Sequence record: NC_048047.1
DNA length: 64,000 nucleotides
Direction: 5' to 3' (one strand)
The position numbers and the translations under genes were made by a program. Position 1 is the first letter of the stretch. Each line of letters begins with the position of its first letter. The notes under the pieces were generated by a model. It was not told where the DNA came from, did not search any database, and saw nothing but the letters and a program-made list of their open reading frames with translations. Shown piece by piece: positions 44,357 to 64,000 of this stretch.

Positions 44357-44657
44357 CTGACCCATTTTAGGGTTAATGTCGCGCCCTAACCCGATTTTGG
44401 GCGACACCCAGGCGAACGGGCGCCGGCCGGGTCGTGATCCCCGGCCGGTGGGTCAGTGGAGCAGCCAGAGCAGAAACGCCAGCGCCGCCAGTGACCAGCC
44501 GTTCAGCAATTTCAGGGTGGGCGCCTCTCTCGTCTGCCGTGGCCGCTCGCCACCCCTCATTCATCGCATACAAGAAAACTGTTGCCAAGCCCCAAAGATC
44601 GCTTGACAGCATAAAAGCCCAATGCGACAAGAGGCCATCCAAACGGGAGACACCCCA

Positions 44658-45230
44658 ATGACCGAGCAAACCCTAGACCTTCTCTATCCGGCCCTGATGC
44701 TGGAGCAGAAGATTCCCCACCGCGAAGGCATGTTGCGGCTGGCCATCGTCCTGCGCGACTTTGGCCCCAAGGCGCCCCATCGCTACGTCACCCACCTGCG
44801 GATCGAAAACCCCGTACCGGGCTCGGAACACGCCTTCACCTACAGCTATGACCACGGCACCTATTCGGCCGACCTGCGCCGCGCCACCACGGTCTATTTC
44901 GAGCGCGTCGCCGAGCGGGTCATGACCGCCATGGTCGCCCTTCACGACCTGCCCGAAGTCGCCCCGCCCCCGCCGACCGTCACCATGCCGCTCGAACTGG
45001 CCCAGACCGCCTATGGCCTGATCGATGACAACGAACTGGACCTGTCCAAGGCCTGCGGCAACGTCACCTTGGTCGAGGCCGCCATTACCGGGCTGGCGGG
45101 CGTCCTGGGCTCGCTCAAATACTTCCGCGACGTCGAGGAAGGCAACGCCAAGCTTCTGGAGGCCTATGAAGCCGCCCAGGCCGCCCGTGACGCCGCCCTG
45201 GAGGCCGAATCCGAGGCCGAAGAGGCCTAA
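44658..45230 (+). CDS. cassette hypothetical protein
   Basis: promoter 44603, GGGAGACACC RBS. Confidence 0.75.
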   Translation: MTEQTLDLLYPALMLEQKIPHREGMLRLAIVLRDFGPKAPHRYVTHLRIENPVPGSEHAFTYSYDHGTYSADLRRATTVYFERVAERVMTAMVALHDLPEVAPPPPTVTMPLELAQTAYGLIDDNELDLSKACGNVTLVEAAITGLAGVLGSLKYFRDVEEGNAKLLEAYEAAQAARDAALEAESEAEEA

Positions 45231-45374
45231 AAGGACGCGCCCAGGCCTCCCCGGCCTGGGCGTTGCCCATTCACCAGGCGTTAAGGTTAACCGCGAAATT
45301 AGTGCGAGAAATCTGTTGACACGCATTGAGGCCCTATGCGAGAACAAAGCTCCACTTCATGAGGAGCGCCAAGC

Positions 45375-46031
45375 ATGGCCCTGCCCGATCGCCTCTTTGT
45401 TTCCACCGACGGCGCGCTTTACGACACGGCCGCAGAGGACTGGAGCCGCCGCGCGCCCGTGCGCCGCCGCTACAATATCCTGACCAGCGAGGTCACCGAT
45501 ATGCAGGACGTCAAGGCCGCCCTGCGCCATGGCCCCTACGCCTTCCCCGGCGGCTATCCGCACTATTTCGTCACCCGCGACGGCGTGGCCCTGTCCTTCG
45601 ACAGCGTGCGCAAGATGCTCTATCAGGTCGCGGACGATTTTCAGCATGACGCCTCGACCGGCTGGCGCATCGCCGCCATCGTCCCCAATTTCGAAGACGA
45701 CGATCTCGTCTGCGACCACAGCGGCGAGAAAATCCCCTCGGCCTATGGCGCGGGCGATGAGTCGCAAGACGATGACGCCCCCATGGCCTGGGCGGTCGGC
45801 GCCAACGTCTCGGGCTTCATGCCCGACAGCGAGCCGGTGCATTATGCCGATTGGACCGACGCGCGGCGCGGCCTGATCGACCTAATCGGACAAGCCCGCG
45901 AGGCCTACGAGGAAGACTCCGCCGAGGACGCAGCTTTCCAGACCATGCTGGACGCCTTGCGCGCCGTGCCCGATGAGGCTGAGTTCAATTGGGGCGCGGT
46001 CGGCTATCGCTGGTGGCTTGAGCGCCTGTAA
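45375..46031 (+). CDS. cassette hypothetical protein (acidic)
   Basis: promoter 45316, GAGGAG RBS; YAFPGGYPHYF. Confidence 0.8.
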   Translation: MALPDRLFVSTDGALYDTAAEDWSRRAPVRRRYNILTSEVTDMQDVKAALRHGPYAFPGGYPHYFVTRDGVALSFDSVRKMLYQVADDFQHDASTGWRIAAIVPNFEDDDLVCDHSGEKIPSAYGAGDESQDDDAPMAWAVGANVSGFMPDSEPVHYADWTDARRGLIDLIGQAREAYEEDSAEDAAFQTMLDALRAVPDEAEFNWGAVGYRWWLERL

Positions 46032-46183
46032 CCGCGAGCCCAGGCCTTCGCGCCTGGGCTTTGCCCCGCCCCCTGGGCGTTAAGGTTACCCGCGAAAATA
46101 GTGCAAGAAACCTGTTGACTCGCTTTGCCGCCCATGCGAGAACAGGGCTCAGACGAAACGACGAGACCACAAAGGAGGCCGCC

Positions 46184-46192
46184 ATGAAGTAG
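46184..46192 (+). other. two-codon minigene ATG-AAG-TAG
   Basis: AAGGAGG at 46172-46178 directly upstream. Confidence 0.45.
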
Positions 46193-46213
46193 CGACAATC
46201 TGGAGCACATCTC

Positions 46214-46687
46214 ATGGAAATCTACGTTGGCCTGCGTGACGATCTGGTTCAGGTCGGGACTCATTGGGAGGACGGGGAACCGGAGTTTGCCCGTGTCATC
46301 ACGGTCTATCTCCAGGCGCCTGACGGCTCCCGGATCATCCACGATTACCGGTTCACCACGCGCGGCCCCCAAACCCAGGATGGGGATGGGATGCCATGTT
46401 GGCCACAACTCGATATCGAGGCTGTCGTCACCGAGGCGCAAGCCTTCCGCGACAAGGTGGAAGCCCATCTCAAGGCTGGTGGCCGCATCAAGCGCGAGCA
46501 TTGGCGCGAGATCGATCCGGCCTACGGGTCCAGGGCCTATGCCGATCTCGACCAGTTCGGCTATTGGCGCGCCATCGAACGTCAAGGCTGGCGCGACCAT
46601 GGCGAGAACGTTCCGCCCGATCAGTGGGACGCCATCGCCGGTTTTGCCGAACCCAACGGCTGGCCCTTGCCAGACCTCTTTGCCTGA
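46214..46687 (+). CDS. cassette hypothetical protein
   Basis: GGAG RBS, terminator after the stop. Confidence 0.75.
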   Translation: MEIYVGLRDDLVQVGTHWEDGEPEFARVITVYLQAPDGSRIIHDYRFTTRGPQTQDGDGMPCWPQLDIEAVVTEAQAFRDKVEAHLKAGGRIKREHWREIDPAYGSRAYADLDQFGYWRAIERQGWRDHGENVPPDQWDAIAGFAEPNGWPLPDLFA

Positions 46688-46873
46688 TCCCAAGGCCCGC
46701 CTCCCCGGCGGGCCTTTTCTTGACCACCGCCTGGGGTTAACCTTAACGTCGCCTTAAGGTTAACCCGCCCAGGCCGGCGCCCAGGCGAAAAAGATTGCGA
46801 GAAACCTGTTGACACGCATGGAAGCCCTATGCGAGAACAGGGCACCAATTCAACGCCAGCCGGGAGACACCCC

Positions 46874-47455
46874 ATGGCCCTTGTCACCGAGTCCTTTGTC
46901 GTCGATATCGACTGCACCCGCGCCCTGACTGCCGCCGAGCGGCGAGGACTGGCCGGCGCCATCGCCCAGGTCCTGGGCGTCAATATTGATCGTGTCGAGC
47001 CCGAACCGGGCGGTTTCCTGACCGCCAATATCGGCCGCGTGCGCCCGGCCGGCATGGTCGGCGCCTCAGGTCAAGAGGCTCGGATCAAGACCGAGGCCCT
47101 GACCAGCCGCGACCATGACGCGCCCGTCGCCCTGACCCTGGAGGCTGGCGAGCGCGTCGATGTCATCGCCCGCTTCTACTGCATGGCCGATGCTGAGACC
47201 TATCTGAACGAAAACCCCGACATCGACCCGGTGTCGCTGAACCTGGGCTGCTATGGCATTGACGCGCCGTTTGGCGTGGCCAGCGACGCGGACGGCGACA
47301 AGCTCCTCTATGAGCTGGGCTATCGCCTGCACGCCACGGGCGGCGGGTCGTGGTCCTTCACCGATCCGAAGGGCTATCTCTGGGACGGCGGCGGCAAGCG
47401 TGAGGCCGTGGTCATGATCGCCCTGAAACAAGCCGCCGACGCCGAGGAGGCCTAA
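46874..47455 (+). CDS. cassette hypothetical protein
   Basis: promoter 46809, GGGAGACACC RBS. Confidence 0.75.
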   Translation: MALVTESFVVDIDCTRALTAAERRGLAGAIAQVLGVNIDRVEPEPGGFLTANIGRVRPAGMVGASGQEARIKTEALTSRDHDAPVALTLEAGERVDVIARFYCMADAETYLNENPDIDPVSLNLGCYGIDAPFGVASDADGDKLLYELGYRLHATGGGSWSFTDPKGYLWDGGGKREAVVMIALKQAADAEEA

Positions 47456-47459
47456 GACC

Positions 47460-47876
47460 ATGACCGGTTACACGATCAAGCTCGAAGTTCAGGTCAACCC
47501 GGCTGACAGCCTGGAGCAGGCGCGCAAGGACGTCGAGACCGCCATTATCAAGGCCGATCTTCCGGCCTGGATGGAATGGATGATCATCGACGCCGCGCCC
47601 CTGGCGCCGGTGATCGCGCCGGCCACGCGCTGGGCGACCTTCGTCGGTCAGGCCTGGATCAACGGCCACACGATGGAAGTGGACGACAGCCGCGTGAGCT
47701 ACGGTGTCACTGACGAGGAGTTTGACGAAAACGGCGGGGACGAGCCGGCCGACTTCGACGCCCTGGCCCAGGCCGCCCGCGCTCCCGACTGGGTGCGCAA
47801 CTGGTCAGGCCCCTTCGACATCTACATCTCGGACATTCCAGACGGGCAGGACCCGGATATTCCGGTTTTCGGCTAA
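47460..47876 (+). CDS. cassette hypothetical protein (acidic)
   Basis: GAGGAGG RBS. Confidence 0.75.
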   Translation: MTGYTIKLEVQVNPADSLEQARKDVETAIIKADLPAWMEWMIIDAAPLAPVIAPATRWATFVGQAWINGHTMEVDDSRVSYGVTDEEFDENGGDEPADFDALAQAARAPDWVRNWSGPFDIYISDIPDGQDPDIPVFG

Positions 47877-47945
47877 GGGTGCAAGAAAGCTGTTGACAGC
47901 ATAACAGCCCTATGCGAGAAAGGGTCATAGCAAGGAGACACCGCT

Positions 47946-48176
47946 ATGACCCCCAACCCGACCGAAGAGGGCAAGGCCGCCGCCCGCCAATGGCTGGCCA
48001 ACTCGACCAGCGAATGGGCGCCCGAGCCCAAGAACCCCTATCGCACCCTGGCCCGGTCGATGACCGCCCGCACCGACGAGGAACGCCGCTGGGACGCGGG
48101 CTATCAGCACATCCTCGACCTGGAATTCCCCGACGACGGCGCCGAGCAGCGCGCCGAACGCGCCTTTGGCTGCTAG
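47946..48176 (+). CDS. cassette hypothetical protein
   Basis: promoter 47893, AAGGAGA RBS. Confidence 0.75.
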   Translation: MTPNPTEEGKAAARQWLANSTSEWAPEPKNPYRTLARSMTARTDEERRWDAGYQHILDLEFPDDGAEQRAERAFGC

Positions 48177-48329
48177 AGAGGTCCGCCGGCTCACCCCGGC
48201 GGACTTTCCACCACCGCCCGGCGTTAACCTTAACGCCGCCTTAAGGTTACCCGCGAAAATAGTGCAAGAAAGCTGTTGACAGCATAGAGGCCCTATGCGA
48301 GAAAGGCTCATCGAAACGGGAGACACCCC

Positions 48330-48839
48330 ATGGACGACACCTATCCGCCCCTGACCCCCGGCCAGCAGGACGCCCTGGTCGCCTTCGCTGACCAGCATGG
48401 CGGCCTGGGCGAGGCCTGGAAGGAAGCCCTCGGCGACGCCTGGAGGACGTGCAGCGAGCCCGAGGCGCTCAAGGCCGACCTGCGGACCATCCGCAACACC
48501 TATGGCCCCTCCTGGCTCTATGATGAATACGCCTGGGGCTGGCGCCCGACCCTGCCGGCCTGGGAGCGCGCCGGGCGCTGGACCGACACCCCGCCCGAGC
48601 CGACGCCGGGCAAGGCCCGCTGGAGCGCCGCCTTCGACCCGCCGGCCATCGGCGAGCGCGTCCGGGTGACCACCAACGGCCTGGGCTGGGCCAAGGTCAC
48701 CGGCTACTTCGTCGAAGGCGACTGGCTGGGCGTGATCGTCAAGCTGGAGGCCCCGGCCGACTGGTATGTCAAACAGAACGGCGGCAACGTCCCCGGCCAC
48801 AGCTTCGGGACCGAGATCGCCCTGACCGACCCCGCGTGA
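48330..48839 (+). CDS. cassette hypothetical protein (two modules, C-terminal SH3-like)
   Basis: promoter 48276; LRTIRNTYGPSWL; PAIGERVRV. Confidence 0.75.
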   Translation: MDDTYPPLTPGQQDALVAFADQHGGLGEAWKEALGDAWRTCSEPEALKADLRTIRNTYGPSWLYDEYAWGWRPTLPAWERAGRWTDTPPEPTPGKARWSAAFDPPAIGERVRVTTNGLGWAKVTGYFVEGDWLGVIVKLEAPADWYVKQNGGNVPGHSFGTEIALTDPA

Positions 48840-49020
48840 CCTGGGCGGCCCTGGCTGGGAGACCAGCCGGGGCGACGCCTTGGCCGGCGCGGTTAACCTT
48901 AAGGCCGCGTTAAGGTTAACCGCCCGCGCCCTCCGCCCGGCGAAAGAAAATGCAAGAAAGCTGTTGACACGCATCCGAGACCTATGCGAGAAAGGCGCAT
49001 CGAACAACGGAGGCCCTTCC

Positions 49021-49863
49021 ATGGCCAAGCTTTTCAGCGATCTCCAAGACCTTGCCACCTCGACCTATGTCGTGCGCATCGTCGACAATGGCGGCGAGAG
49101 CGCCGACCGTTACACGATCGTCACCGCCGATGGCGACTATTACGCCTACAGCGCCAATCCCTCCCATCCCCAAGGCGTGGGCCTGAGCGGCGAGGGCATC
49201 GACCCGCAAGTTCTGGCCGACTGGGTAGAGCGCGGGCAGGCCATCGACCTGACCATCGGCGAACTACCCGAGGGCGCCGCCCGCTGCCTGCTGGCGTCGA
49301 TCAACGCCAGCGTCGAGGACTTCCTGGCCGCTGTCCTGGACCCGACGTCCAACGCCGTGGCCCCGACCCGCGAAAAGGCGGAGATCAACGAGGGCGTCAT
49401 GGATTGCTTCGGCAAGGGCATCTATCGTGTCGGCGAGGGTTTCGCCGTGCGTATGGATGGCATGGACGCGGGCGATGATCGCGGACCGTTCATGACCGCT
49501 GTCGATGCGGTCAAGGCCACCCTCCCCGATGAATACGCCTGGGCGGGCGAGGAATACCTGTCGCCGCGCGACATGACCAAGGTCACGCCCGAAGCCAAGC
49601 CGCTCGTCTTGGTTCACGCCCTGGAGGCCATTCGCGACTATGAATATCAGCGCGACACACCCGGCGCGTTTTTCGACGGCCTGCACAAGGACGACACTGA
49701 CGCGGGCCTGGGCATCGTGCGCCGCACGCGCTACCTGTCCAAGGTCACCGGTGATGCGACCATCGTCGGGCTGATCGGCGAGGCGCCGGCTTTCGCCCTG
49801 GCCCATGCGTGCCTCGACCAACTGTGGACCCTGGCGCAAGAGCGTTGGGAGGCGGGCCAGTGA
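49021..49863 (+). CDS. cassette hypothetical protein
   Basis: promoter 48964; DNGGESADRYTIV, NPSHPQGVG. Confidence 0.8.
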   Translation: MAKLFSDLQDLATSTYVVRIVDNGGESADRYTIVTADGDYYAYSANPSHPQGVGLSGEGIDPQVLADWVERGQAIDLTIGELPEGAARCLLASINASVEDFLAAVLDPTSNAVAPTREKAEINEGVMDCFGKGIYRVGEGFAVRMDGMDAGDDRGPFMTAVDAVKATLPDEYAWAGEEYLSPRDMTKVTPEAKPLVLVHALEAIRDYEYQRDTPGAFFDGLHKDDTDAGLGIVRRTRYLSKVTGDATIVGLIGEAPAFALAHACLDQLWTLAQERWEAGQ

Positions 49864-50099
49864 GCGCCCGCGAACGCCGCGCCCTCGCCGAACTGCTGGC
49901 CCTCTTCCATGCCGTCAATAGCGGCCATGTCAAGGGCCGCAACCCCTACGCCTTCCCGGCCGTCAAGCTCGCCAACGCGGCGTTGACGGGCGATCCGCTG
50001 GACGGGGGATTCCACGTCGCCGAAGCGCTGGACACCCTGCGCACGTCCGATGGCAAGGCGCTGCTATTCGACACCGAATTTCCCGAAGAAAGCGGTTGA
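49860..50099 (+). CDS. cassette hypothetical protein
   Basis: GTGA coupling; stop lies in the next -35 box. Confidence 0.65.
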   Translation: MSARERRALAELLALFHAVNSGHVKGRNPYAFPAVKLANAALTGDPLDGGFHVAEALDTLRTSDGKALLFDTEFPEESG

Positions 50100-50150
50100 C
50101 AGCATAAGGGGCCTATGCGAGAAAGGGTCATCAACGGAGACACCCCGCCC

Positions 50151-50291
50151 ATGTGGACCGACAAGACGTTCAAGACCCGGACCGCCAAGGAGGCCTGGAT
50201 CGCCCGCAACGAAGACCGCTATCAGATCGTCGAGATCGTGGTCTGCAACGCTTACGGCGTGTCCTACAAGCCCCTGCGACGCGTCTACTAG
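50151..50291 (+). CDS. 46-aa cassette protein
   Basis: promoter 50096, GGAGACACC RBS; translated by hand. Confidence 0.65.
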   Translation: MWTDKTFKTRTAKEAWIARNEDRYQIVEIVVCNAYGVSYKPLRRVY

Positions 50292-50302
50292 GAGACCCGC
50301 CC

Positions 50303-50494
50303 ATGATCCCCGACTCGGTCCGCAACCCCAAGGACCACTGGACCCCCATCGCCACCCGCGCCGAGGCGGACGCCCTGGCCTTCCGCTACAACCAAGACGA
50401 CGACGGCCCCGGCCTCTACGAGGTCCACGAAAAGGGCGCGACCTTCGCCATCGCCTACTATGACGAAGACGGCGTGTTCTGCGCCTACGTCTAG
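50303..50494 (+). CDS. cassette hypothetical protein
   Basis: AGGAGA RBS, terminator after. Confidence 0.7.
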   Translation: MIPDSVRNPKDHWTPIATRAEADALAFRYNQDDDGPGLYEVHEKGATFAIAYYDEDGVFCAYV

Positions 50495-50683
50495 CCGTCA
50501 CCTCGTCACCTTGAAGGCCGGCGCCGCTCTCCTGGCGCCGGCCTTTTCTTTGCGCCCGGCCGCCCGGTTAATCTTAAGGCGGCGTTAAGGTTAACCCGCC
50601 GCATCCCGCCCTGATGCAAAAAACCTGTTGACACGCATGGAAGCCCTATGCGAGAAAGACGACGAACACGGGAGACACCCCTT

Positions 50684-51688
50684 ATGACCACCGCCACCAT
50701 CGCCGGCGCCGAACACACGATGATCGGACAAGCCGCCTACCGCTCCACCCAGCGCCCGCATCAAGTGCAGGACATGGCCTATGGCGCGTTCCCGGCCGCC
50801 ACGTCGGACTCGCCCTTCGCCGTCAAGCCTGCCTGCGGCAAGACCCCGAGCGCGCGCGTGCTGGAGGACTTCGACCCCGCCGACGTCTTCACCATCAAGC
50901 CGCGTGATCGCGGCGACGGCTTCCTTGCGGTCGCCAACTTCGGCGGCTCTGAGGTGTCGTGGATCAGCGTCGCCGGCTATGGCGACACCGAAGACGCCGC
51001 GCGCGCCAACCTCATGGCCAAGTTCATCGACGATCGCGACGGCAAGAGCAAGTTTGGCCCCCATGAGCCGCTCAAGGGCTATGACTGGTCCTATAAGCTG
51101 GCGCCCTATTGGGACATGCTGGAGCGCGAGGCCGCCATTCGCCAGCCCTTCAAGCGCACGCTCTACCTGGGCAAGCTGAAGTCGGGCCGCCCCAATCCCA
51201 AGGGCTTTGACGTGTTCGTCGATGTCGAATGGACCGGCGAGCGCCTGAGTCTGTCGGGCGTCATCGGCCCCAAGGCCAATGGCAACGCCTGGGGCGGCTG
51301 TGGTCAGATCGTCGGCAGTCTTGCGCGCAAGGACTTTCTGGAGTTCGCCCCGTCCTGGCATTATGGCTCGGCCCTTGACGGTCTGGTCAAGGCCTGGACC
51401 CGCTGGCACCTGAACGACATGCGCGCCGGCACGCCTCGCCAGCAAGAACACCTGCGAGGCTATCAGGCCAAGCGCAACATTGAGCAGGCCAAGGCCGCCG
51501 GCGCCCACCATCTCGACGCCACCCGCGCCGAACTGGCGCGCGTCCATCTGGAGCCCGACACCTGGGAGCGCCGCAACGGCCGGCCCTATAGCTACGGCTC
51601 CGCATGGTTGCGCGAGGAGGTCCCCACCTTCGTTCTCGACTTCCTGCGCAATCTCCCCGCCCCCGTCAAAACCAGCCCCTGGAGGTAA
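50684..51688 (+). CDS. cassette hypothetical protein
   Basis: promoter 50628; WTRWHLNDMRAGT, YSYGSAWLREEVP. Confidence 0.8.
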   Translation: MTTATIAGAEHTMIGQAAYRSTQRPHQVQDMAYGAFPAATSDSPFAVKPACGKTPSARVLEDFDPADVFTIKPRDRGDGFLAVANFGGSEVSWISVAGYGDTEDAARANLMAKFIDDRDGKSKFGPHEPLKGYDWSYKLAPYWDMLEREAAIRQPFKRTLYLGKLKSGRPNPKGFDVFVDVEWTGERLSLSGVIGPKANGNAWGGCGQIVGSLARKDFLEFAPSWHYGSALDGLVKAWTRWHLNDMRAGTPRQQEHLRGYQAKRNIEQAKAAGAHHLDATRAELARVHLEPDTWERRNGRPYSYGSAWLREEVPTFVLDFLRNLPAPVKTSPWR

Positions 51689-51695
51689 CCCGCCC

Positions 51696-52391: not shown

Positions 52392-52406
52392 CAGAGGAGG
52401 CGCCGC

Positions 52407-55963: not shown

Positions 55964-56300
55964 GGGCAAGTCGCGCGTTCCCCAACGCCTGCTGATCGCC
56001 AGTCGGCCGACCCTGGTCGCCGGCCCCTCGCCAGCCACCCGCCGCCACTGGTGGGACCTTCTGGACAGCGCGGGCCACCCGCGCGACCTTGAGGCCCTGC
56101 TGGTCGTCACCATCGACCAAGACGCGGCCGAAACCGTCGTCGCGGTCCTGCCGCTCGCCGCCGCCGACTACAGCGAAGAAGCCGTCAAGGCTGACGCCCT
56201 GGTCGCCGCCCACACCCGCCCCCGCAGCCCTGGCAAGCGCGACGCGCTCAACGCCTATGTGCTGCATGTCAATGACCCCCATGCGGAGCATCAACCGTGA
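55950..56300 (+). CDS. cassette hypothetical protein
   Basis: overlap coupling. Confidence 0.6.
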   Translation: MTRTKGKSRVPQRLLIASRPTLVAGPSPATRRHWWDLLDSAGHPRDLEALLVVTIDQDAAETVVAVLPLAAADYSEEAVKADALVAAHTRPRSPGKRDALNAYVLHVNDPHAEHQP

Positions 56301-56755: not shown

Positions 56756-56898
56756 GCCAAGGCCCGCCCCTCCCTTCAGGCAAGGAAGGCGGCGGGCCTT
56801 GCCCTGGGCGATCGCGGTTAACCTTAACGTGCAAGAAATCTGTTGACACGCATTGAGGCCATATGCGAGAAAGGACCACCGCAACGGGAGAGACCCCC

Positions 56899-57207
56899 AT
56901 GACTGCCCAAGCCGTTCTGACCGCCCGCCTTGACCGCGCCGTCGCCGTGATCTCTGGCGACATCCCCAAGAGCCGGCGCAAGGTGCGCAAGGCCCGCCGC
57001 GCCTTCCAGCGCGCCCTGGAAGGGATGGACATCCCGACCTATGTGGCGTGGATCAACCACCCCGACTCGTTCATCGCCCTCACCGACGATGTCGAGCACT
57101 GGGCGCAAAGCGGGATCACCACCGCCGCCCAACTGGGCGCCTATCTCGACGGCTGCGCCCGCCATGAGGCCCGCAAGGACTTGATGAGCGGCTACCTCGA
57201 CGACTAG
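56899..57207 (+). CDS. cassette hypothetical protein
   Basis: promoter 56843. Confidence 0.7.
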   Translation: MTAQAVLTARLDRAVAVISGDIPKSRRKVRKARRAFQRALEGMDIPTYVAWINHPDSFIALTDDVEHWAQSGITTAAQLGAYLDGCARHEARKDLMSGYLDD

Positions 57208-57301
57208 GCGGCAAAAAGGCCCGTCCCCTGGTGGGGCGGGCCTTGTCCTGTCCGATCGGGATTAACCTTAACGCGAGATTAAGGTTAACGCAGCCTTAAG
57301 G

Positions 57302-57544
57302 TTAAGTGGCGTTCTTGCGCGTCGTGGCCTGGGGATTGGCCTTCAACCATGCGTCGGCTTCCGTCCGGGTCGAGAACGGCGCCCCGCCAATGCCCTGCGT
57401 CCCGTCGTCCCATTGGATGGTCCAACCCACGTTCTTGATTTCCCAATCTTCGGCCACGCCGTGGGGGATCGGGGCGTGTACGCCAATACGGGTAAACGGC
57501 GCCCGCTTCAGTTGACGGACACGCGCCGGGATCACTTGCGGCAT
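57302..57544 (-). CDS. inverted cassette hypothetical protein
   Basis: AGGA RBS on minus strand; own leftward promoter; WTIQWDDG...FSTRTEADAWL. Confidence 0.65.
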   Translation of the reverse strand: MPQVIPARVRQLKRAPFTRIGVHAPIPHGVAEDWEIKNVGWTIQWDDGTQGIGGAPFSTRTEADAWLKANPQATTRKNAT

Positions 57545-57597
57545 TTCAGGGATTTCCTATTGACAAAGGCCTTGCCCCATGGGCGGCCCGAAAGGCG

Positions 57598-57625
57598 ACT
57601 GTATCAAGCGGCGCCGCCGTGTCAA
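57598..57625 (-). promoter_or_regulatory. leftward promoter
   Basis: TTGACA-N16-TACAGT on the minus strand. Confidence 0.6.
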
Positions 57626-57725
57626 GAAACGCGACACAGACTGAGAAAGCGGTTGACACGCATCTAAGCCCTATGCGAGAAAGATCAGGCACGGCGCACC
57701 CCCGCGCCCCTGGGAGACACCCCGC

Positions 57726-58496
57726 ATGGACCTGACCACGTTTTCGGCCTCGGCTGAATTTGTTCTCTGCAACAAGCCGGTGAAGATCACCGTCAAGCCC
57801 GCCGGCCGACCGCTCTACCTGTCGTTTTCCATCGAACAGATCGGCATGATCGGCGGTAGCGACGAATTGATGAGCGAGGCCGAACAACACGACGTTGAGG
57901 ACTTGGTGACGGTCTTGACCATCGCCGACGTCCTGTCCCTCAAGCCCATCGAGACCTATAACGACGAAGACCGCGACGCCGTCGAGAGCGTGCGCTATGC
58001 GCTGATCATGCTCAACGGCGAGCGCTACGCTTCGGCCGTCGCGTTCGAGGATGTCGGCGAGGCCGATTTTTCCAATCGCGACGACACCATTGACACCCGC
58101 CAAATCGTCGAGCGGGTCGAGGTGCTTCGGAGCGCCCTGGAGACGGCCGGCGTCGAGACCGGCGACCTCGCCGCCCTGGAAGCCCTCGACGAAGAAGAGG
58201 CCGTGACGGACCAAGACCAGCGCGAGACCTTCAACGAGATTCGCGAGGAATATCTGATCCTGGCGCGCATGGTCGAGGAGGGCGCCAACTACGGCGAGGA
58301 TTGGACGTTCGGCGCCACCCTGGTCCGCGAATCCTACTTCACCGAGTTCGCGCAAGAAGAGTGCGAAAGCCTGGGCTACATCGCCAAGGACTTCCCGTCG
58401 TGGATTTCCATCGACTGGGAAAAGACCGCCAACACGATGAAATCCGACTATACCGAAATCGACTTTGACGGCGTGAGCTACTACGTTCGCGCCTAG
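57726..58496 (+). CDS. ArdA-like antirestriction (DNA-mimic) protein
   Basis: very acidic; C-terminal ESYFTEFAQEECESLGYI...PSWISIDWEKTA...DYTEIDFDG. Confidence 0.55.
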   Translation: MDLTTFSASAEFVLCNKPVKITVKPAGRPLYLSFSIEQIGMIGGSDELMSEAEQHDVEDLVTVLTIADVLSLKPIETYNDEDRDAVESVRYALIMLNGERYASAVAFEDVGEADFSNRDDTIDTRQIVERVEVLRSALETAGVETGDLAALEALDEEEAVTDQDQRETFNEIREEYLILARMVEEGANYGEDWTFGATLVRESYFTEFAQEECESLGYIAKDFPSWISIDWEKTANTMKSDYTEIDFDGVSYYVRA

Positions 58497-58559
58497 GTGA
58501 AGCTCCTCGAAGGCGGCGGCCTGCTCGCGCTCTGCTTCCTCTTCTGGTTGCTTCATTAA
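58497..58559 (+). CDS. 20-aa hydrophobic peptide (copy 2)
   Basis: GTG directly after the upstream TAG; terminator after. Confidence 0.75.
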   Translation: MKLLEGGGLLALCFLFWLLH

Positions 58560-58656
58560 CCCCGGCCGGCGTCCATGACCTGGGCGCCGGCCTTTTCTTT
58601 GCGCCGCGATCGGGGTTAACCTTAAGGCGGCGTTAAGGTTAACGGCGGGCCTGGGA

Positions 58657-58752
58657 GGAAAGGCGTCAAGGCCGCGAGCTAGGATTACACGCGATGGCTT
58701 AGCCGGCGTCCAGCCGGCGGCGCCTTCGACCACCGCGAGGCGGCCTTGACCC
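58657..58752 (-). ncRNA. candidate ~95-nt structured small RNA
   Basis: minus-strand TTGACA-N15-GCGAGAT promoter (58785-58758); 11-bp closing stem 58665-75/58740-50; nested stems; no evident ORF. Confidence 0.45.
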
Positions 58753-58871
58753 TCGTAATCTCGCCGACCCGTCGCCCGGTGTCAACCGTTTTCTTTCTCC
58801 AAGAATTCTGTTGACACGCATCGAAGCCCTATGCGAGAAAGGGTCATCTTCAACGCCTGGAAAGAAAATCC

Positions 58872-59528
58872 ATGCCCCGCACCGTCACCAAACAGGTCTT
58901 CACGTTCAAGGAGTTGAACGACAAGGCCAAGGCCAAGGCTATCGAGTGGTATCGCGGCCTCAACGACCAAGACTCCGGTTGGTGGGAGTTCGTCTATGAC
59001 GAAGCCGACCGCATCGCCGACGCCTTCGGGATCACCCTGCGCCGCAAGGAAGCCGGCAAGCCCAATAGCGGCCCGGACATCATGTTCACCGGCTTCTGGA
59101 GTCAAGGCGACGGCGCCTGTTTCCAAGGTCGCTACGAGTCGCCCCAAACCCCGGCCGTCGAAGCCTTCGCCGCCCTGGGAATCGAAGACGACACGCTCAA
59201 GGCTCTGGCCGCCCGTCTGGACGCTCTGAGCGCCAAGGTTCGCCTGATCACCACGGTCAAGCACTCTGGCCACTACTACCACGAGTATTGCACCGACTTC
59301 GAAACCGAACGCATGGTTCCCGACGAAGCCGGCGACGCCTTCGACCCTTACGACTTCGAGCACGAAGACGAAAAGGAACTGATCGACATTCTGCGCACCT
59401 TCATGAAGTGGATTTATCGCCAGCTTGAAGTCGTCGAGGAAGACCGCAATTCCGACGAAACGATCAGCGAATATCTGACCGACTCTGATTACGAGTTCGA
59501 GGCGGACGGCTCGCCGACCAACGACTAA
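58872..59528 (+). CDS. conserved acidic protein (FWSQGDG family)
   Basis: promoter 58811; VFTFKELNDKAKAKAIEWYR, FTGFWSQGDGACF. Confidence 0.75.
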   Translation: MPRTVTKQVFTFKELNDKAKAKAIEWYRGLNDQDSGWWEFVYDEADRIADAFGITLRRKEAGKPNSGPDIMFTGFWSQGDGACFQGRYESPQTPAVEAFAALGIEDDTLKALAARLDALSAKVRLITTVKHSGHYYHEYCTDFETERMVPDEAGDAFDPYDFEHEDEKELIDILRTFMKWIYRQLEVVEEDRNSDETISEYLTDSDYEFEADGSPTND

Positions 59529-59700
59529 GCCAAGCCCGCCGCGCCCGGCCTTTTCGCCGGGCGCGTGTCGGGTTTTGGTTTTCCAAGGTCTTGTTAAGGT
59601 TAACGAAAAAAGCCCTCCAGCGACCTGAGAAACTGCAAGAAAAATGTTGACTGCATCCAAGCCCTATGCGAGAAAGGCTCATCGCAACGGGAGACACCCC

Positions 59701-59988
59701 ATGACGACCCCGACCAAGAAGCGCCGCAAGCGCTACCCGCCCAAGAGCGACGCGGCTAAGGCTCGCGCCGCCGCCAAGAGCAAGGCGTTCTTCGCCAAGC
59801 ACGCGCTCAAGGCCACCGAGGCCACGATCGCCGCCATGAAGGCCGGCGACCAAAAGGCCGTCCAACGCCACGCCAAGGACGCCCGGCGCCTGAACCGCTG
59901 GATGATCCACAAGCGCGACATCGCCGCCGCCTTCGCGGCCCTTTTCGACCTGCGCGCCGCGCGCCTCGCCCTGGAGCTTGCCGCATGA
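59701..59988 (+). CDS. cassette basic protein
   Basis: promoter 59647; K/R/A-rich. Confidence 0.7.
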   Translation: MTTPTKKRRKRYPPKSDAAKARAAAKSKAFFAKHALKATEATIAAMKAGDQKAVQRHAKDARRLNRWMIHKRDIAAAFAALFDLRAARLALELAA

Positions 59989-60200
59989 CCCGTCGCCCTG
60001 CCTATCTGACCGTCCTGGGCGGTATCGGCCTCATCCTCGCCAGCCTCGCGCTTTCGGCCGCCAGCGCCCCGGAAAAGCGGGTTCTCGTGGGTCAATACTG
60101 CGACGGCGACCTTGTGCGCCTCTACGGCCTGGAAGACGGCGAGGAAGCGGCCGAGGCCTGCGCCATCGTCGAAGTCCACGCCCTGCCCAAGGGCCTTTGA
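59985..60200 (+). CDS. small exported or membrane protein
   Basis: ATGA coupling; signal-like N-terminus. Confidence 0.65.
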   Translation: MTRRPAYLTVLGGIGLILASLALSAASAPEKRVLVGQYCDGDLVRLYGLEDGEEAAEACAIVEVHALPKGL

Positions 60201-60202
60201 CC

Positions 60203-60541
60203 ATGGAACGCCTCAACGTTCACGTGCTGACCATCACCTATGACAGCGGCAACCCCGTCCCGCCGTTTGTCGCTCTGGCCATGTCCAAGGAGGAGCTTGA
60301 CGACAACCTGCAAGCCAAGGCGCGCGAGGAAGTCGAAAACCTCTATTTCGAGGAAGACGACCTCTTTGACGACCTCGCCAAGGTCCTGACCGCCGAACGC
60401 GTCGCCGAGCTTCAGCCCCTGGGCCTGGACGCCATCGGCCTCCTGACCCCGGTCGAAGTCGTCACCATGGCCAAGCAATTTGCGTCGATCACGCCAAGCT
60501 TTGACGTGCTTCCGCTCTACCTCGAATCGACCCCGACCTGA
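60203..60541 (+). CDS. cassette acidic hypothetical protein
   Basis: ORF in cassette. Confidence 0.7.
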   Translation: MERLNVHVLTITYDSGNPVPPFVALAMSKEELDDNLQAKAREEVENLYFEEDDLFDDLAKVLTAERVAELQPLGLDAIGLLTPVEVVTMAKQFASITPSFDVLPLYLESTPT

Positions 60542-60621
60542 CGCAAGAAAGCTGTTGACAGCATAATTCGCCTATGCGAGAAATGACTGTCAACGGCGAT
60601 TCCCGCCGCATGGAGACACCC

Positions 60622-60966
60622 ATGAAGCTGATCAAACACGACGTTCTCGACCACGGCCGCGCCTCGACCCTGCGCAACGCCCTGGGCACGGCCCTGGAAC
60701 GATACGCCGAAATCGCCAAGGACTTCGAAGGCTACGCCATCGAATACGCGGCCCTGGACGAGGCGGGCAAGCAAGCCTGGAAGGCCACCAATAGCTGGAT
60801 CAATCCGCGCGCCCTGCCGGACCTGAAAAAGCAATTCGAGCGCCAAGTCACCGAGGTGCAAGACCTCATCGACTGGCTGGACGGCGACAAATTCCAAGAC
60901 GAAAACGGTCAATACCCGGAAAACACCGAGTTCACCGTCGTCGCCGGCCTGATCCGCGACTTCTAA
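60622..60966 (+). CDS. cassette hypothetical protein
   Basis: promoter 60555, GGAGACACC RBS. Confidence 0.75.
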   Translation: MKLIKHDVLDHGRASTLRNALGTALERYAEIAKDFEGYAIEYAALDEAGKQAWKATNSWINPRALPDLKKQFERQVTEVQDLIDWLDGDKFQDENGQYPENTEFTVVAGLIRDF

Positions 60967-61161
60967 ACGCCCTGGCCAAGGCCCGCCCTCACGGCGGGCC
61001 TTTTCCTTGACCCCGCGCCGCTGTTAACCTTAACGTGCAAACGTTCGCCGATTAACCTTAACGAGACATGTCCGTTCCGTTAACCCTGTCGTGCAAAAAA
61101 GCTGTTGACTCGCATCCAAGCCCTATGCGAGAAAAGGCCATCAGCAACGGGAATGACCCCC

Positions 61162-61572
61162 ATGACCAAACCCGAAATGACCCCGGAAGAACGTCGAGCC
61201 CAGCTTGACGACATGCTCAAAATCTGGCGCGAGCGCGTCGAGACCGCCAAGCAACGCCTGTCGATCAACGTCCTGGTCGGCCGAGGCTTCCTCTGCGTCC
61301 TGGAGCGCGAGCCCAGCGGCATGGCCATCGGCCCGACCGAGGATGACAAGGGCTGGCGCCTTGTGGCCATGAACCCCTGGTTCACCGGCTGCGTCAAATG
61401 GGCCAAGGCCGACGCCGAACAAGTCGCCGCGCACTGGAACGCCAACCTCACCGGCGACGCGGCCCTCTACTGCGTGGTCAAGGTCATGCACTATCGCGCC
61501 GTCCTCGAAGAGATGGTCACCAAAGGCGAGGAGATGATCGCCTTCATGGAAGACCGCTATAAGGCCGCCTGA
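61162..61572 (+). CDS. cassette hypothetical protein
   Basis: promoter 61105; alternative start at 61153. Confidence 0.7.
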   Translation: MTKPEMTPEERRAQLDDMLKIWRERVETAKQRLSINVLVGRGFLCVLEREPSGMAIGPTEDDKGWRLVAMNPWFTGCVKWAKADAEQVAAHWNANLTGDAALYCVVKVMHYRAVLEEMVTKGEEMIAFMEDRYKAA

Positions 61573-61760
61573 TCTTGACGCCCTCCGGCTCCGGCCGGAG
61601 GGTTAATTTTTGGTCGACCCGGCGTCAAGGTTAACGCGCTCCAGCCTGGGGTTAACCTTAACCCGCAACCGTTTGCACGTTAACCATTTGGCGCAAGAAA
61701 CCTGTTGACACGCATTTCTGTCCTATGCGAAAAGAGGCCATCCAATCAACGGAGGCCCGC

Positions 61761-62417
61761 ATGGCCAGCCCTGAAGATATCGCCATCGTCCAAGCCGCGC
61801 CGGTCAGTTTCGACCTCGAAGCGTGGGAGGAAGAAAACGGCCAATATGCCCAAGACCACTGGCGCCACCTCAACTACGCCTTTGAGATCAAGGGCTATAA
61901 GCACATGTTCACGCAAGATCAGCGCGCCGCCGCCGATCGCCTGATCGCCGAATATGAGGAAGCCCAAGACGACCACCGCGAAACCTACCGCGCCGAAAGC
62001 GACGCCGTTTTCTGGGCGGCCGACGCCTTCGCTCGCCAGTACATCGGCACGGCGCTCTGGACGGGCGTTAGCTACCCCATGGGCGATGATCGCGGCGGAA
62101 GCGACAGCTACTATGACGGCGAATCGGCCTGGATCACGCCCAAGACCCTGCGCGAGATGATCGAAGATTGCGACGCCTTCCAGCGCGACAACGTCGCCGC
62201 CCTGGCCAAGGCCTATGCGTCTGACGTCTGGATCGAAGGCGAGCGCTACAACGCCAGCAACGCCGGTCACGATTTTTGGTTGACCCGCAACGGTCACGGC
62301 GTCGGCTTTTGGGATCGTGGCCTAGGCGAGGTCGGCGAGACCCTTTCCGAAGCCGCCCGCAAGGTCGGAGAATACAGCCTAGCCCTTGACGACAACGGCG
62401 AAATCAGCCGCATGTAA
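61761..62417 (+). CDS. conserved phage protein (GHDFWLTRNGHG family)
   Basis: promoter 61705; AGHDFWLTRNGHGVGFWDR. Confidence 0.8.
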   Translation: MASPEDIAIVQAAPVSFDLEAWEEENGQYAQDHWRHLNYAFEIKGYKHMFTQDQRAAADRLIAEYEEAQDDHRETYRAESDAVFWAADAFARQYIGTALWTGVSYPMGDDRGGSDSYYDGESAWITPKTLREMIEDCDAFQRDNVAALAKAYASDVWIEGERYNASNAGHDFWLTRNGHGVGFWDRGLGEVGETLSEAARKVGEYSLALDDNGEISRM

Positions 62418-62579
62418 CCCCGGCAAAGGCCCGCTTGACAGCGGGCCTTTTTCGTGCCTGCGCCTGGGGTTAACCTTAACGCCACCCCGCTCCGCCTTAA
62501 CGCTCTTTTCTGCAAGAAAACAGTTGACTCGCATCCGCGCCCCATGCGAGAAAAGGTCATCAACCACGGAGCGCGGCAC

Positions 62580-62954
62580 ATGGCCAAGCAAGAACAACTT
62601 GAAATCGCCCTGGTCCTGCTGGACGAGCACAAGGCCAAGATCGGCGCCCCTCGCGCCTTCACCTACGGCGAAGTCATCGAGGCGTACCGCGACGCGGGCG
62701 CCCTGATCAGCGCCGAGGTCCGCTTGCAGCGGATCGCCGAAAACGAGTGCAACGGCTACCGCGACGAGACGGCCGAAAAGCTCGATGAGCGCCGCCGTCA
62801 GACCCTCGAAGCCAAGGCCGGCGAAATCGCCAAGCGCTACGGCGTGGCCCTGACGTTCGGCGGCGACCCGCGCGGATCGGCCCTCAAGATCAAGACCCCG
62901 CACACGGGCCGTTACAACGGCTTTGGCGGGCGTGAGGATGGATGGGCCGTCTAG
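62580..62954 (+). CDS. conserved phage protein (GDPRG family)
   Basis: promoter 62524; LQRIAENECNG, FGGDPRG. Confidence 0.75.
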   Translation: MAKQEQLEIALVLLDEHKAKIGAPRAFTYGEVIEAYRDAGALISAEVRLQRIAENECNGYRDETAEKLDERRRQTLEAKAGEIAKRYGVALTFGGDPRGSALKIKTPHTGRYNGFGGREDGWAV

Positions 62955-63021
62955 GCCCATTCTGACCCCTTCCACCCCTGTAGCGCGTCCCCTCTCAACC
63001 CCTGGCCCTAGGAGACACCCC

Positions 63022-63192
63022 ATGGCCCGCACGACCATCCACACCCGCACCGACAAGGCCAATCGCGAGGCGCTGACCCCGTGGGAATATGAGCGCCAGC
63101 ACCGCGCCGACAAGAAAGCCGCCAAGTCCTGGCGCACCGATCGCCAAGGCCGCCGCGCCCTGGCCTCTTCGGACGCCTTCAAGGCCCACTAA
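63022..63192 (+). CDS. small basic protein
   Basis: AGGAGACACC RBS. Confidence 0.65.
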   Translation: MARTTIHTRTDKANREALTPWEYERQHRADKKAAKSWRTDRQGRRALASSDAFKAH

Positions 63193-63286
63193 ATCGGCCT
63201 CGAAAAAAGTTCGGCTCGATGCGAGAAACCTGTTGACTCGCATCGAGCCCCTATGCCATAAAGGGTCATCAAACGGAGACACCGAC

Positions 63287-63451
63287 ATGACCCACTTCCA
63301 ACGCGCCACCGAAGACCAAGTCACCGTCGCCCACCACACCGTTTCGGGCGGTGAACTGACCGTCACCACCCGCCCCCTGGCCCGCCCGGTCTACCGCCTG
63401 AACGGCTTCAAGATCAGCGCCGCCGACGCCGCCCGCAAGCTGGCCGCCTAA
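63287..63451 (+). CDS. cassette small protein
   Basis: promoter 63233, terminator after. Confidence 0.65.
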   Translation: MTHFQRATEDQVTVAHHTVSGGELTVTTRPLARPVYRLNGFKISAADAARKLAA

Positions 63452-63685
63452 GACCCCTCCCCTAGAAGGCCCCCTCCCTGGAGCGGGGCCTTTTTCGTGG
63501 CCGTTAGGCAGGCGTTAGGGTTAACCGGTAGGGTGAATTCGTTAACCTTAATGGGGCGTTAAGGTTAACCCAGCCAGCCCAGGCTGTTAACCATGTAGGC
63601 GAAGAAAGTGCGATCTCGTGTAAGAAAGCTGTTGACTGCATAAGAGCCATATGCGACAAAGGGTCATCAGCAACGGAGCTACCCG

Positions 63686-63856
63686 ATGTCCTTCCGCCTT
63701 TCCCTCACTGACGAAGCCCGTTTCACCGCCGCGCGCGGCGCCGTTCGCACCGTCCGGGAACAGGCCCGCCCTGAGCCGGCCAAGGACGGTTCGGGCAAGT
63801 ACGTCCTGGCCTCGCAAGACGCCCTGTCGCGCATCCGCGCCGTGCTGGGCAACTAA
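63686..63856 (+). CDS. cassette small protein (56 aa)
   Basis: promoter 63632, GGAG RBS; translated by hand. Confidence 0.65.
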   Translation: MSFRLSLTDEARFTAARGAVRTVREQARPEPAKDGSGKYVLASQDALSRIRAVLGN

Positions 63857-63859
63857 GCC

Positions 63860-64000
63860 ATGAAGGTCACGGCGCACTATGGCAACGGGCTCTCGCGGGT
63901 CATCCCCTGCGAGACGCGAGAGGCCGCCCTGGACGCGATCAAGGCCGCGTTGCGCTATGATCGCTCGGCGACCTTCACGGTTGACAAGCGGATCACCCAA
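63860..64000 (+). CDS. hypothetical protein, truncated by window end
   Basis: MKVTAHYGNGLSRVIPCETREAALDAI... Confidence 0.55.
   Translation, partial: MKVTAHYGNGLSRVIPCETREAALDAIKAALRYDRSATFTVDKRITQ

Follow-up and report, generated by a model that had tools for sequence, protein, structure and literature searches.

The system closest to the one examined here was described by Mascolo et al. (2022), who screened phage genomes for boxes of the host response regulator CtrA and recognized a class in which high-scoring intergenic sites are strongly clustered within terminal repeats or gap regions (PMC9437464). In phiCbK, gp005 and gp018 gave gel shifts with phosphorylated CtrA and strongly CtrA-dependent reporters, and "lytic deferment" was proposed from the phiCbK results; binding of CtrA together with an effect on expression was shown for phiCbK, vB_BsubS-Delta and Cp1R7A-A1 (PMC9437464). 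The supplementary table of the same study lists Caulobacter phage CcrBL9 under the label LPEG, where it has 32 predicted CtrA sites and a low normalised positional entropy (0.66), and the clustering of CtrA sites in the terminal repeat of this phage is already published at the computational level (Mascolo et al., 2022). In LPEG phages, which infect Alphaproteobacteria and depend on pilus and flagellum, TTAA-N7-TTAA boxes and half-sites are confined to the direct terminal repeat (DTR) and lie in intergenic regions upstream of orphan genes (PMC9437464), and the same arrangement was seen in CcrBL9. Here we analysed a window of 64,000 nucleotides from CcrBL9 (NC_048047.1), in which an array of small genes is punctuated by TTAA elements, namely TTAA-N7-TTAA boxes, 10-mers of the form TTAA-CC/GG-TTAA and palindromes made of them. 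On balance we consider it probable that these elements are CtrA sites, predicted as such, which would feed the cell-cycle state of the host to early genes, and that the gene cassettes recombine homologously.

A query with positions 44600-64000 of the window matched CcrBL9 (322,272 bp, genus Bertelyvirus) with 100% identity. A second query with positions 30000-46000 matched positions 288272-304272 of the record, so the window represents the final 64,000 nt of NC_048047.1. The annotation of this record places the DTR at 1-22260, and its right copy starts at position 300013 of the record, i.e. at 41741 of the window. CcrBL9 is a lytic giant phage, and the host given in the record is Caulobacter vibrioides CB15, an alphaproteobacterium with CtrA. 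The original prediction, which was made from the letters of the window, had described a reiterated cassette array at 44600-64000. Our analysis recovered such an array, with 23 promoter modules, with hairpins and with the proposed order of elements in 16 long gaps; however, it covers the whole DTR (41741-64000) and not just the interval named at first. The block of about 40 small orphan genes is organized as 23 short transcription units, and the position in the DTR together with the host-type promoters suggests that these are early genes.

All nine TTAA-N7-TTAA cores listed in the original prediction (46743, 48230, 48899, 50574, 55300, 57268, 57285, 58622 and 63548) were present with the spacers given there, and a tenth was found at 44048. 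These 10 exact matches in the window, against 0.02 expected, all fall within 44048-63562, and none was found in the remaining 277,752 nt of the genome, which were scanned separately in five pieces. The tetramer itself was also concentrated: TTAA occurred 79 times in the 22-kb repeat, 78 of them in intergenic DNA, versus 74 times in the 278 kb outside, and every one of the 36 GTTAAC in the window was inside the repeat. Outside the intergenic DNA of the repeat TTAA was depleted, with 12 copies in 41.7 kb of the window (about 40 expected from base composition) and a single one in the 16.7 kb of coding sequence of the repeat (about 17 expected), as would be the case if stray CtrA half-sites are selected against.

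The basic unit of the elements is the 10-mer TTAA-NN-TTAA, with 30 copies that hold 60 of the 79 TTAA of the repeat; NN is CC or GG in 29 of them, and 18 are flanked by G and C. The "11-7-11 palindrome" that had been taken for the repeated unit does exist, but it is one arrangement of the 10-mer: two inverted copies 7 bases apart make up 31 nt, and their inner TTAA pair forms the canonical CtrA box. Inverted 12-7-12 pairs were exact in six cases and imperfect in two to three, and extended arms of the form GGTTAACC-TTAA ... TTAA-GGTTAACC were visible at 6-8 sites. The spacers are GC-rich (A or T at 6 of 70 letters). Eight different ones were found at the ten sites, GGCGGCG being present at three, and most of them fit S-GC-S-GC-S, which reads as the same pattern on both strands. 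At four other junctions (52670, 61052, 61652 and 62470) a 10-mer is separated by N17 or N18 from a single TTAA.

A pattern search detected 23 copies of the promoter TTGAC, 13-14 nt, TATGCGA on the plus strand between 44603 and 63656, and the same pattern is found 23, 24 and 34 times in the repeats of the relatives CcrSC, RB23 and BL47, respectively. According to column counts, the conserved promoter block begins 13 nt upstream of TTGAC and ends about 18 nt after TATGCGA, and a start codon follows 28-35 nt downstream of the block in 18 of the 23 copies. Every unit opens with the same module of about 85 nt, in which a -35 element of the TTGACA type is followed by a conserved downstream box, a short leader and a ribosome-binding site with GGAG. 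The leader sequence GGAGACACC, which is a ribosome-binding site plus spacer, had 12 copies (0.66 expected), all of them on the plus strand of the repeat and immediately 5' of a start codon. Many units close with a GC-rich hairpin terminator, and in 16 long intergenic gaps the order is hairpin, TTAA element, promoter and leader. A generic sigma-70 and terminator scan missed the promoter, the spacing of which is unusual, and reported fewer terminators than in shuffled sequence; promoters and hairpins were thus identified by custom pattern searches and hairpin scans.

TTAA elements were present in all 16 long gaps (at least 143 nt) in which the stop codon is followed by a stable GC-rich hairpin, although this link between terminators and TTAA leans partly on inspection of the gaps and on hairpin energies, as a strict terminator rule accepted just 7 hairpins. 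Counted by promoter, 16 of the 23 carry TTAA elements within 260 nt upstream, and the seven without lie in gaps of 33-94 nt (six) and of 243 nt (one). Upstream of the promoter at 44603 there is just a single TTAA at a distance of 230 nt, and at the convergent gp028/gp029 junction (57260-57307) the terminator and a double box are not accompanied by a promoter. The hairpin-TTAA-promoter unit that had been proposed for the whole array is therefore met with in the long gaps and fails at these seven promoters and at this junction. The boxes lie 19-195 nt upstream of a -35 element TTGAC(A) that is intact at every promoter, and in 9 of the 16 TTAA-bearing promoters a 10-mer is found at -54/-48 (+/-1 nt) from the T of TTGAC. 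The longer distance at the 55300 junction is due to a 24-nt direct repeat (2.1 copies, 55323-55372) between the palindrome and the promoter at 55389.

Some further observations concern the promoter and leader modules. A scan of the rest of the genome gave two promoter copies outside the repeat, one at position 22337 of the record, just past the repeat, and one at 28052-28076 of the window; the latter has the exact pattern, lies where a coding region ends and has no TTAA nearby. For gp037 the spacing of 28-35 nt suggests a start 17 codons upstream of the annotated one, at an in-frame ATG near 61162 (61130-61213). The leader of gp006 (46139-46214) contains a two-codon mini-open reading frame, ATG-AAG-TAG, after a good ribosome-binding site.

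Comparison with relatives showed which letters of the elements are kept. At ten orthologous sites of CcrBL9 and CcrSC the TTAA letters were identical, whereas the spacers differed at 25 of 70 positions. At two of them (CcrBL9 55300 and 58622, CcrSC 14277 and 17686) the spacer was replaced by its reverse complement, exactly at the first and with one mismatch at the second, with arms and flanks unchanged. Such flips are small loop inversions, which are expected at perfect short inverted repeats, and they show that the orientation of the spacer is not under selection. In the junction after gp031 the 10-mers are N7 apart in CcrBL9 and CcrSC and N17 apart in BL47 and RB23, a difference of one helical turn that is also seen in the four N17/18 junctions of CcrBL9. 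The 10-mer was kept in all four Bertelyviruses, with 26-45 copies in each versus 4-12 full boxes (26 and 4, respectively, in RB23), and exact inverted pairs numbered 6 in CcrBL9, 8 in CcrSC, 1 in RB23 and none in Ccr2. As far as can be judged from sequence comparison, this conservation pattern is typical of a protein site whose spacer is not read.

TTAA letters that do not vary, helical phase that is preserved and a distance to the -35 element that is fixed indicate together that selection acts on the TTAA letters themselves. For this reason it seems improbable to us that the palindromes are functionless passengers of a terminator-promoter module spread by duplication or gene conversion, as in the PeSL elements of T4-like phages (a host-type early promoter plus a stem-loop). 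Passengers would explain why full palindromes are abundant only in the sub-lineage of CcrBL9 and CcrSC (6 and 8 exact pairs) and why similar terminators are found in junction modules that have a spacer in common, e.g. those at 50574 and 58622; the modules, moreover, do recombine. However, passengers would not be expected to keep TTAA invariant within the elements while neighbouring spacer letters drift and TTAA is depleted elsewhere, nor to keep the helical phase in the change from N7 to N17 or the same distance to the -35 element in nine promoters.

The extended palindrome is not restricted to these phages. In an exact scan of 185,579 reference bacterial and archaeal genomes, its 29-nt form was found in four genomes, none of them Caulobacter. 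In Hansschlegelia it lies 56 nt before an open reading frame (ORF) with a flagellin N-terminal domain, and in two Methylopila genomes it precedes an ORF whose N-terminus is also of this kind. In Alphaproteobacteria, the genes of the flagellum are classical targets of CtrA. The position upstream of a flagellin gene, as read from these sequences, argues for a conserved host factor and not for a phage-specific one. In phages, the exact scan detected it in CcrBL9 and CcrSC and also in five unrelated contigs of metagenomic phages, which differ in base composition and spacers. Contigs of IMG/VR (3300036945_000620, 3300017716_002524 and 3300017778_003242; 48-58% GC) have dense arrays of the 10-mer and the extended palindrome; their spacers are of a conserved, A/T-containing type (C/T-AGGCT-G/A), and the arrays adjoin TTAACCATG hairpins. 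These contigs probably represent further phages of Alphaproteobacteria with CtrA-type clusters.

Taken as CtrA sites, the elements could work as follows. One to several TTAA-CC/GG-TTAA 10-mers stand between the terminator and the next promoter in 16 long junctions; CtrA, possibly with its partner SciP, would bind the 10-mers or palindromes, and this binding would feed the cell-cycle state of the host into the transcription of the first genes of the phage. The mechanism would be the same as the published "lytic deferment" of phiCbK-like phages. The cassette-like appearance would have a cause of its own: the repeated promoter and terminator modules would serve as portable homology, through which ORFs are replaced, duplicated and amplified by ordinary homologous recombination. 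Anatomy, distribution, conservation pattern and breakpoints were obtained directly in this study, and from them we infer that CtrA binds at these sites and affects expression. A dense CtrA input had been one of two readings in the original prediction, and it agrees with the confinement to the repeat, the invariance of TTAA, the change from N7 to N17, the palindrome upstream of a flagellin gene and the phiCbK experiments (PMC9437464), binding in CcrBL9 being predicted. Because the boxes are 19-195 nt upstream of an intact -35 element and not on it, the sequence does not tell activation, repression and insulation apart.

Several points weigh against this explanation. The evidence for CtrA binding and CtrA-dependent expression would have to be carried over by analogy, since it comes from phiCbK and not from CcrBL9. 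The promoter that recurs in the repeat of Ccr2, a phiCbK-like phage, lacks TTGACA, and its -35 position is occupied by the TTAA box. CcrBL9, however, has its own TTGAC(A) at -35 and boxes far upstream, so the CtrA dependence seen in phiCbK is not simply transferable. The positions of the CcrBL9 boxes (-46, -54, -65, -66, -84, -89 and -189) are not strictly in helical phase. Furthermore, the most conserved unit in Bertelyvirus is the 10-mer, in which the TTAA starts are 6 nt apart and not at the 11-nt spacing of CtrA, and another protein may be the reader of the 10-mer. Finally, the TTAA elements follow the long, terminator-bearing gaps, even the promoter-less one at 57260-57307, and are absent at seven promoters.

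In one alternative, (G)TTAA-CC/GG-TTAA(C) would be the operator of a protein other than CtrA alone, either SciP together with CtrA or a helix-turn-helix protein of the phage, and would serve early shut-off or insulation, with a protein block after each terminator. We regard this as rather unlikely, though with several observations to its credit. It is the 10-mer and not the N7 box that all four Bertelyviruses have retained (26-45 versus 4-12), its G and C flanks on 18 of 30 copies give a 5-2-5 dyad typical of dimeric helix-turn-helix operators, and several XRE-type proteins of this fold are encoded by the phage. The restriction to hairpin-terminator gaps, including 57260-57307, is also in its favour. 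In Caulobacter, the chromatin immunoprecipitation motif of SciP contains a TTAACC half box, and an "extended CtrA box" was suggested (Fumeaux et al., 2014; PMC4083442); the arm of the 10-mer shares TTAACC with this motif. At the host pilA promoter, upstream CtrA sites repress (PMC11264516). However, direct recognition of DNA by SciP is disputed in the literature, the extended palindrome before a flagellin gene in bacteria without this phage points to a host factor rather than a phage protein, and the spacings between TTAA pairs (N7 and N17/18) correspond to CtrA half-sites that are one and two helical turns apart.

The other reading in the original prediction was an integron-like shuffling of cassettes at the palindromes, and it was not borne out. 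We aligned the repeats of CcrBL9 and its closest relative CcrSC, which are about 88% identical, as chained blastn blocks, and the ten gaps between the blocks gave 20 breakpoints. None of the 20 was within 15 nt of a palindrome centre. In contrast, 11 had an annotated ORF edge within 15 nt, where 10.5% would be expected (P about 1e-6), and the number rose to 13 when the promoter end was counted as well (P about 1e-7). In alignments of three junctions, wherever the upstream ORF was replaced, homology resumed at or just before the terminator and continued through palindrome and promoter. The gene thus leaves its terminator and half-palindrome behind when it moves, contrary to what an integron-like cassette does. 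These statistics come from CcrSC only, as the ends of BLAST segments versus BL47 and RB23 (70-80% identity) mostly reflect divergence.

Crossovers within conserved modules are invisible in diverged genomes, hence the near-identical pair BL47/RB23 was compared as well. The BL47 repeat has three recent tandem duplications without counterpart in RB23, which explain its greater length (30.2 kb). In the first, of 1,428 nt (two copies; 21647-24577), an overlap of 74 nt coincides with two promoter modules; the second, of 454 nt and two genes (two copies; 14973-15879), is bounded by ORF edges; and the third, a three-gene unit of 885 nt in about five copies (25338-29830), is an amplification between two 81%-identical copies of a promoter plus gene. 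The 885-nt array was found by offset self-comparison, and Tandem Repeats Finder was blind to it (period above 500 nt). None of the three duplications has its junction at a palindrome. As judged from these alignments, the cassettes appear to be exchanged and duplicated by ordinary homologous recombination between repeated regulatory modules.

A tyrosine recombinase is nevertheless encoded by the genome. The statement that the window has no recombinase holds for the ORFs of the repeat, 39 of which were searched against Pfam with a terminase fragment as the sole accepted match (a WI12 match at 17 bits, versus a cut-off of 27 bits, was disregarded). Elsewhere in the genome gp482 (positions 155823-156551 of the record; 242 amino acids) is annotated by RefSeq as a tyrosine recombinase, and PF00589 matches its whole catalytic domain (3e-16). 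With about 40 residues ahead of this domain it is a minimal recombinase. The HxxR, GH and Y box is retained in its C-terminal part and could be aligned with XerC-like and XerD proteins, and a search of PDB sequences gave no match at 1e-3 and weak XerC-like and XerD matches at looser thresholds. A minimal recombinase was reported in all phiCbK-like phages, where multimer resolution was suggested as its role (Gill et al., 2012). In a tblastn search of a phage collection, orthologues of gp482 were found in every Dolichocephalovirinae genome and in many other phages, including large phages of Ruegeria, Rhodobacter, Phaeobacter and Brevundimonas and also phages of Gordonia and Mycobacterium. It is present in Ccr2, which has no 11-7-11 palindrome, and in RB23, which has one; recombinase and palindromes therefore do not appear to be co-distributed, and no observation supports a link between the two.

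That the palindromes are cores of site-specific recombination, whether for integron-like shuffling or as targets of gp482, is in our opinion extremely improbable. Their inverted arms of 11-12 nt around a 7-nt spacer do fit tyrosine-recombinase cores, and the spacer GGCGGCG is common to three sites. Left-arm halves also tend to follow terminators and right-arm halves to precede promoters. However, the length of the spacer varies at an orthologous site (N7 versus N17), its eight sequences at ten sites and its flips without rearrangement of the flanks are difficult to reconcile with such a core, the terminator stays at the junction, the crossovers of recent duplications map to promoter modules, paralogous genes or ORF edges, and every cassette, in contrast to those of integrons, carries a promoter. 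The conservation of spacers in both orientations had been taken to favour recombination. This argument does not hold, because GGCGGCG and its reverse complement both occur as a consequence of the symmetric pattern S-GC-S-GC-S and of real flips between orthologues. A variant, in which the 31-nt palindromes or 10-mer pairs are targets of gp482 (gp143 in phiCbK), recombination between the DTRs would circularise or resolve the genome and occasionally move cassettes, and CtrA binding would couple this step to the cell cycle, has in our estimate a similarly minute probability.

It was also considered whether the TTAA elements serve replication, packaging or stepwise DNA entry, as origin-like or pause sites, instead of transcription. 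We think this very unlikely. Outside a non-coding hub of 1.45 kb each junction has one element at fixed promoter distances, the equivalent boxes of phiCbK are functional promoter elements (PMC9437464), and no data tie the elements to the ends of the repeat. The confinement of the elements to the terminal repeat would nevertheless suit such a role, and so would the densest array, which lies in the hub beside two other repeat arrays that phiCbK-like phages and Bertelyviruses have in common. The three arrays of the hub region (GGGACCCTG, TTGACG..CATTT and the 10-mers) occur in the same order in the repeat of Ccr2 (about 780-2200). The region may serve as an origin, be recognized by the terminase or have a regulatory role.

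The coordinates of the features are compiled in Table 1. The large terminase ORF extends into the repeat, and the fragment that forms gp001 matches the terminase RNaseH-like domain (PF17289, Terminase_6C, 5e-12); the same layout was described for phiCbK (Gill et al., 2012). No paralogues were found among the 39 ORFs of the repeat by blastp, which agrees with the earlier statement that the small ORFs are unrelated to one another, and an Rfam scan of the repeat returned no family. The product of gp005 (45375-46031), a "DNA ligase" in RefSeq, had no Pfam match at E <=0.01, and this label looks unsupported.

Table 1. Coordinates of features in the 64,000-nt window of CcrBL9 (NC_048047.1)
Feature	Position	Strand	Remarks
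Right DTR	41741..64000	+	22,260 bp; 100% identity to NC_048047.1; contains entire cassette array
Large terminase ORF	39344..42160	+	extends into repeat; 3' part 41789-42160 = gp001 of left copy
Repeat array, ~6 GGGACCCTG	42906..43046	.	period ~23 nt; same array in Ccr2 repeat
Non-coding hub	43203..44657	.	1,455 nt, near left end of DTR; includes first promoter
Hub array TTGACG..CATTT	43832-44029	.	~10 copies
Hub 10-mer array, irregular	44040-44262	.	TTAAGGTTAA / TTAAGGTTAAC 10-mers; one TTAA-N7-TTAA at 44048
Hub A-rich 10-nt repeat	44263-44321	.	
Promoter 1	44603..44627	+	gp004
Single 10-mer TTAAGGTTAA	45281..45290	.	35 nt before -35 element
Promoter 2	45316..45341	+	gp005
Promoter 3	46115..46139	+	gp006; one mismatch
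Terminator-like hairpin	46692..46716	+	after gp006; kept in CcrSC despite different upstream gene
Full palindrome	46735..46765	.	inverted 10-mers, N7 spacer CGTCGCC
Promoter 4	46809..46834	+	gp007-008
Promoter 5	47893..47917	+	gp009; short gap, no TTAA
Full TTAA-N7-TTAA box	48222..48252	.	right arm imperfect; spacer CGCCGCC
Promoter 6	48276..48300	+	gp010
Full palindrome	48891..48921	.	spacer GGCCGCG
Promoter 7	48964..48989	+	gp011-012
Promoter 8	50096..50120	+	gp013-014; no TTAA
Terminator-like hairpin	50513..50546	+	after gp014
Full box	50566..50596	.	left arm imperfect; spacer GGCGGCG; double box in CcrSC
Promoter 9	50628..50653	+	gp015-016
Promoter 10	52127..52151	+	gp017-018; no TTAA
10-mer, N17, TTAA	52670..52700	.	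two helical turns; -54/-48/-27 from -35 element
Promoter 11	52724..52749	+	gp019-022
Promoter 12	54916..54940	+	gp023; no TTAA
Terminator-like hairpin	55251..55273	+	after gp023
Full palindrome	55292..55322	.	spacer GGCGGCG; CcrSC orthologue = exact reverse-complement spacer
Promoter 13	55389..55413	+	gp024-027
Single 10-mer TTAACCTTAA	56818..56827	.	25 nt before -35 element
Promoter 14	56843..56868	+	gp028
Terminator-like hairpin	57216..57244	+	after gp028; kept in CcrSC despite different upstream gene
Double box	57260..57307	.	three 10-mers, 17-nt period, after gp028 terminator; convergent junction, no promoter
gp029-gp030	57302..57692	-	sole annotated minus-strand genes of repeat; counterparts in CcrSC, BL47, RB23
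Promoter 15	57653..57678	+	gp031; overlaps minus-strand gp030; no TTAA
Terminator-like hairpin	58564..58592	+	after gp031
Full palindrome	58614..58644	.	spacer GGCGGCG; flipped in CcrSC; N17 in BL47 and RB23
Promoter 16	58811..58836	+	gp032
Single 10-mer TTAAGGTTAA	59594..59603	.	at -53/-47
Promoter 17	59647..59671	+	gp033-035
Promoter 18	60555..60579	+	gp036; no TTAA
Terminator-like hairpin	60978..61002	+	after gp036
Two TTAACCTTAA 10-mers	61024..61083	.	second then N18 + TTAA
Promoter 19	61105..61130	+	gp037
Terminator-like hairpin	61580..61603	+	after gp037
10-mer, N18, TTAACCAT	61652..61687	.	
Promoter 20	61705..61730	+	gp038
Terminator-like hairpin	62433..62446	+	after gp038
10-mer, N17, TTAA	62470..62500	.	
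Promoter 21	62524..62549	+	gp039-040; one mismatch
Promoter 22	63233..63258	+	gp041; one mismatch; no TTAA
Terminator-like hairpin	63476..63488	+	after gp041
Full palindrome	63540..63570	.	spacer TGGGGCG, identical in CcrSC
Promoter 23	63632..63656	+	gp042-043

The main phenomenon is published, and our results do not change a major open question. A literature search for the literal 10- and 12-mers returned nothing relevant. In the literature found, the 10-mer unit, the link between TTAA elements and terminator gaps and the placement upstream of an intact -35 element appear to be undescribed, as do the alternation of N7 and N17, the spacer flips and the PeSL-like dynamics. The 10-mer, the change from N7 to N17, the spacer flips and the strict link between TTAA and terminators offer specialists concrete handles. 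If the elements are indeed read by CtrA, CcrBL9 would represent a second promoter design for the published reading of the host cell cycle through CtrA by pilus- and flagellum-dependent phages. The boxes would act upstream of a self-sufficient -35 element and paired with terminators, which could mean modulation or insulation over on/off gating.

Compared with recombination systems, the palindromes resemble lox, FRT, dif and attC in their inverted arms, their short asymmetric spacer and the tyrosine recombinase in the genome. However, length, sequence and orientation of the spacer are not conserved in CcrBL9, and isolated half-sites and two-turn variants are common. An integron platform (integrase, attI and Pc) was not present in CcrBL9, and the Pfam search found no recombinase among the ORFs of the repeat. 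The phi29-like phages of Bacillus carry Spo0A boxes in early promoter regions (PMC9437464), likewise sites of a developmental master regulator that read the state of the host; regulator, host and location in the genome are different from those of CcrBL9, and there the regulator represses and is tied to sporulation. Host promoters with multiple CtrA sites, such as pilA (PMC11264516) and the replication origin, have several boxes or half-sites at variable upstream distances, as is the case in CcrBL9, and in the host such upstream sites modulate the activity of the promoter, with repression as one outcome. However, the host sites deviate from the consensus, one of them overlaps the -35 element, and no 10-mer double half-site has been described there.

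In phiCbK, the promoters of which were used in the experiments (PMC9437464), the box replaces the -35 element, as seen in Ccr2, whereas the boxes of CcrBL9 lie upstream of an intact TTGACA. They are also built from the 10-mer, are often part of a 31-nt palindrome and occur only in long gaps led by a hairpin, unlike those of phiCbK. The composite of CcrBL9 is similar to the PeSL of T4-like phages, in which small orphan genes that are not essential are separated by repeated copies of a strong host-type early promoter with a stem-loop terminator (Arbiol et al., 2010, PMC2839356; Comeau et al., 2014, PMC4122927). In both, insertions, replacements and duplications end at the modules. In contrast to PeSL, CcrBL9 belongs to another lineage with another host, has an added regulator-binding element and carries its modules in a terminal repeat instead of internal hyperplastic regions. 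The dynamics of its cassettes would thus extend the PeSL principle, that regulatory modules are recombination handles, from T4-like phages to the giant phages of Caulobacter.

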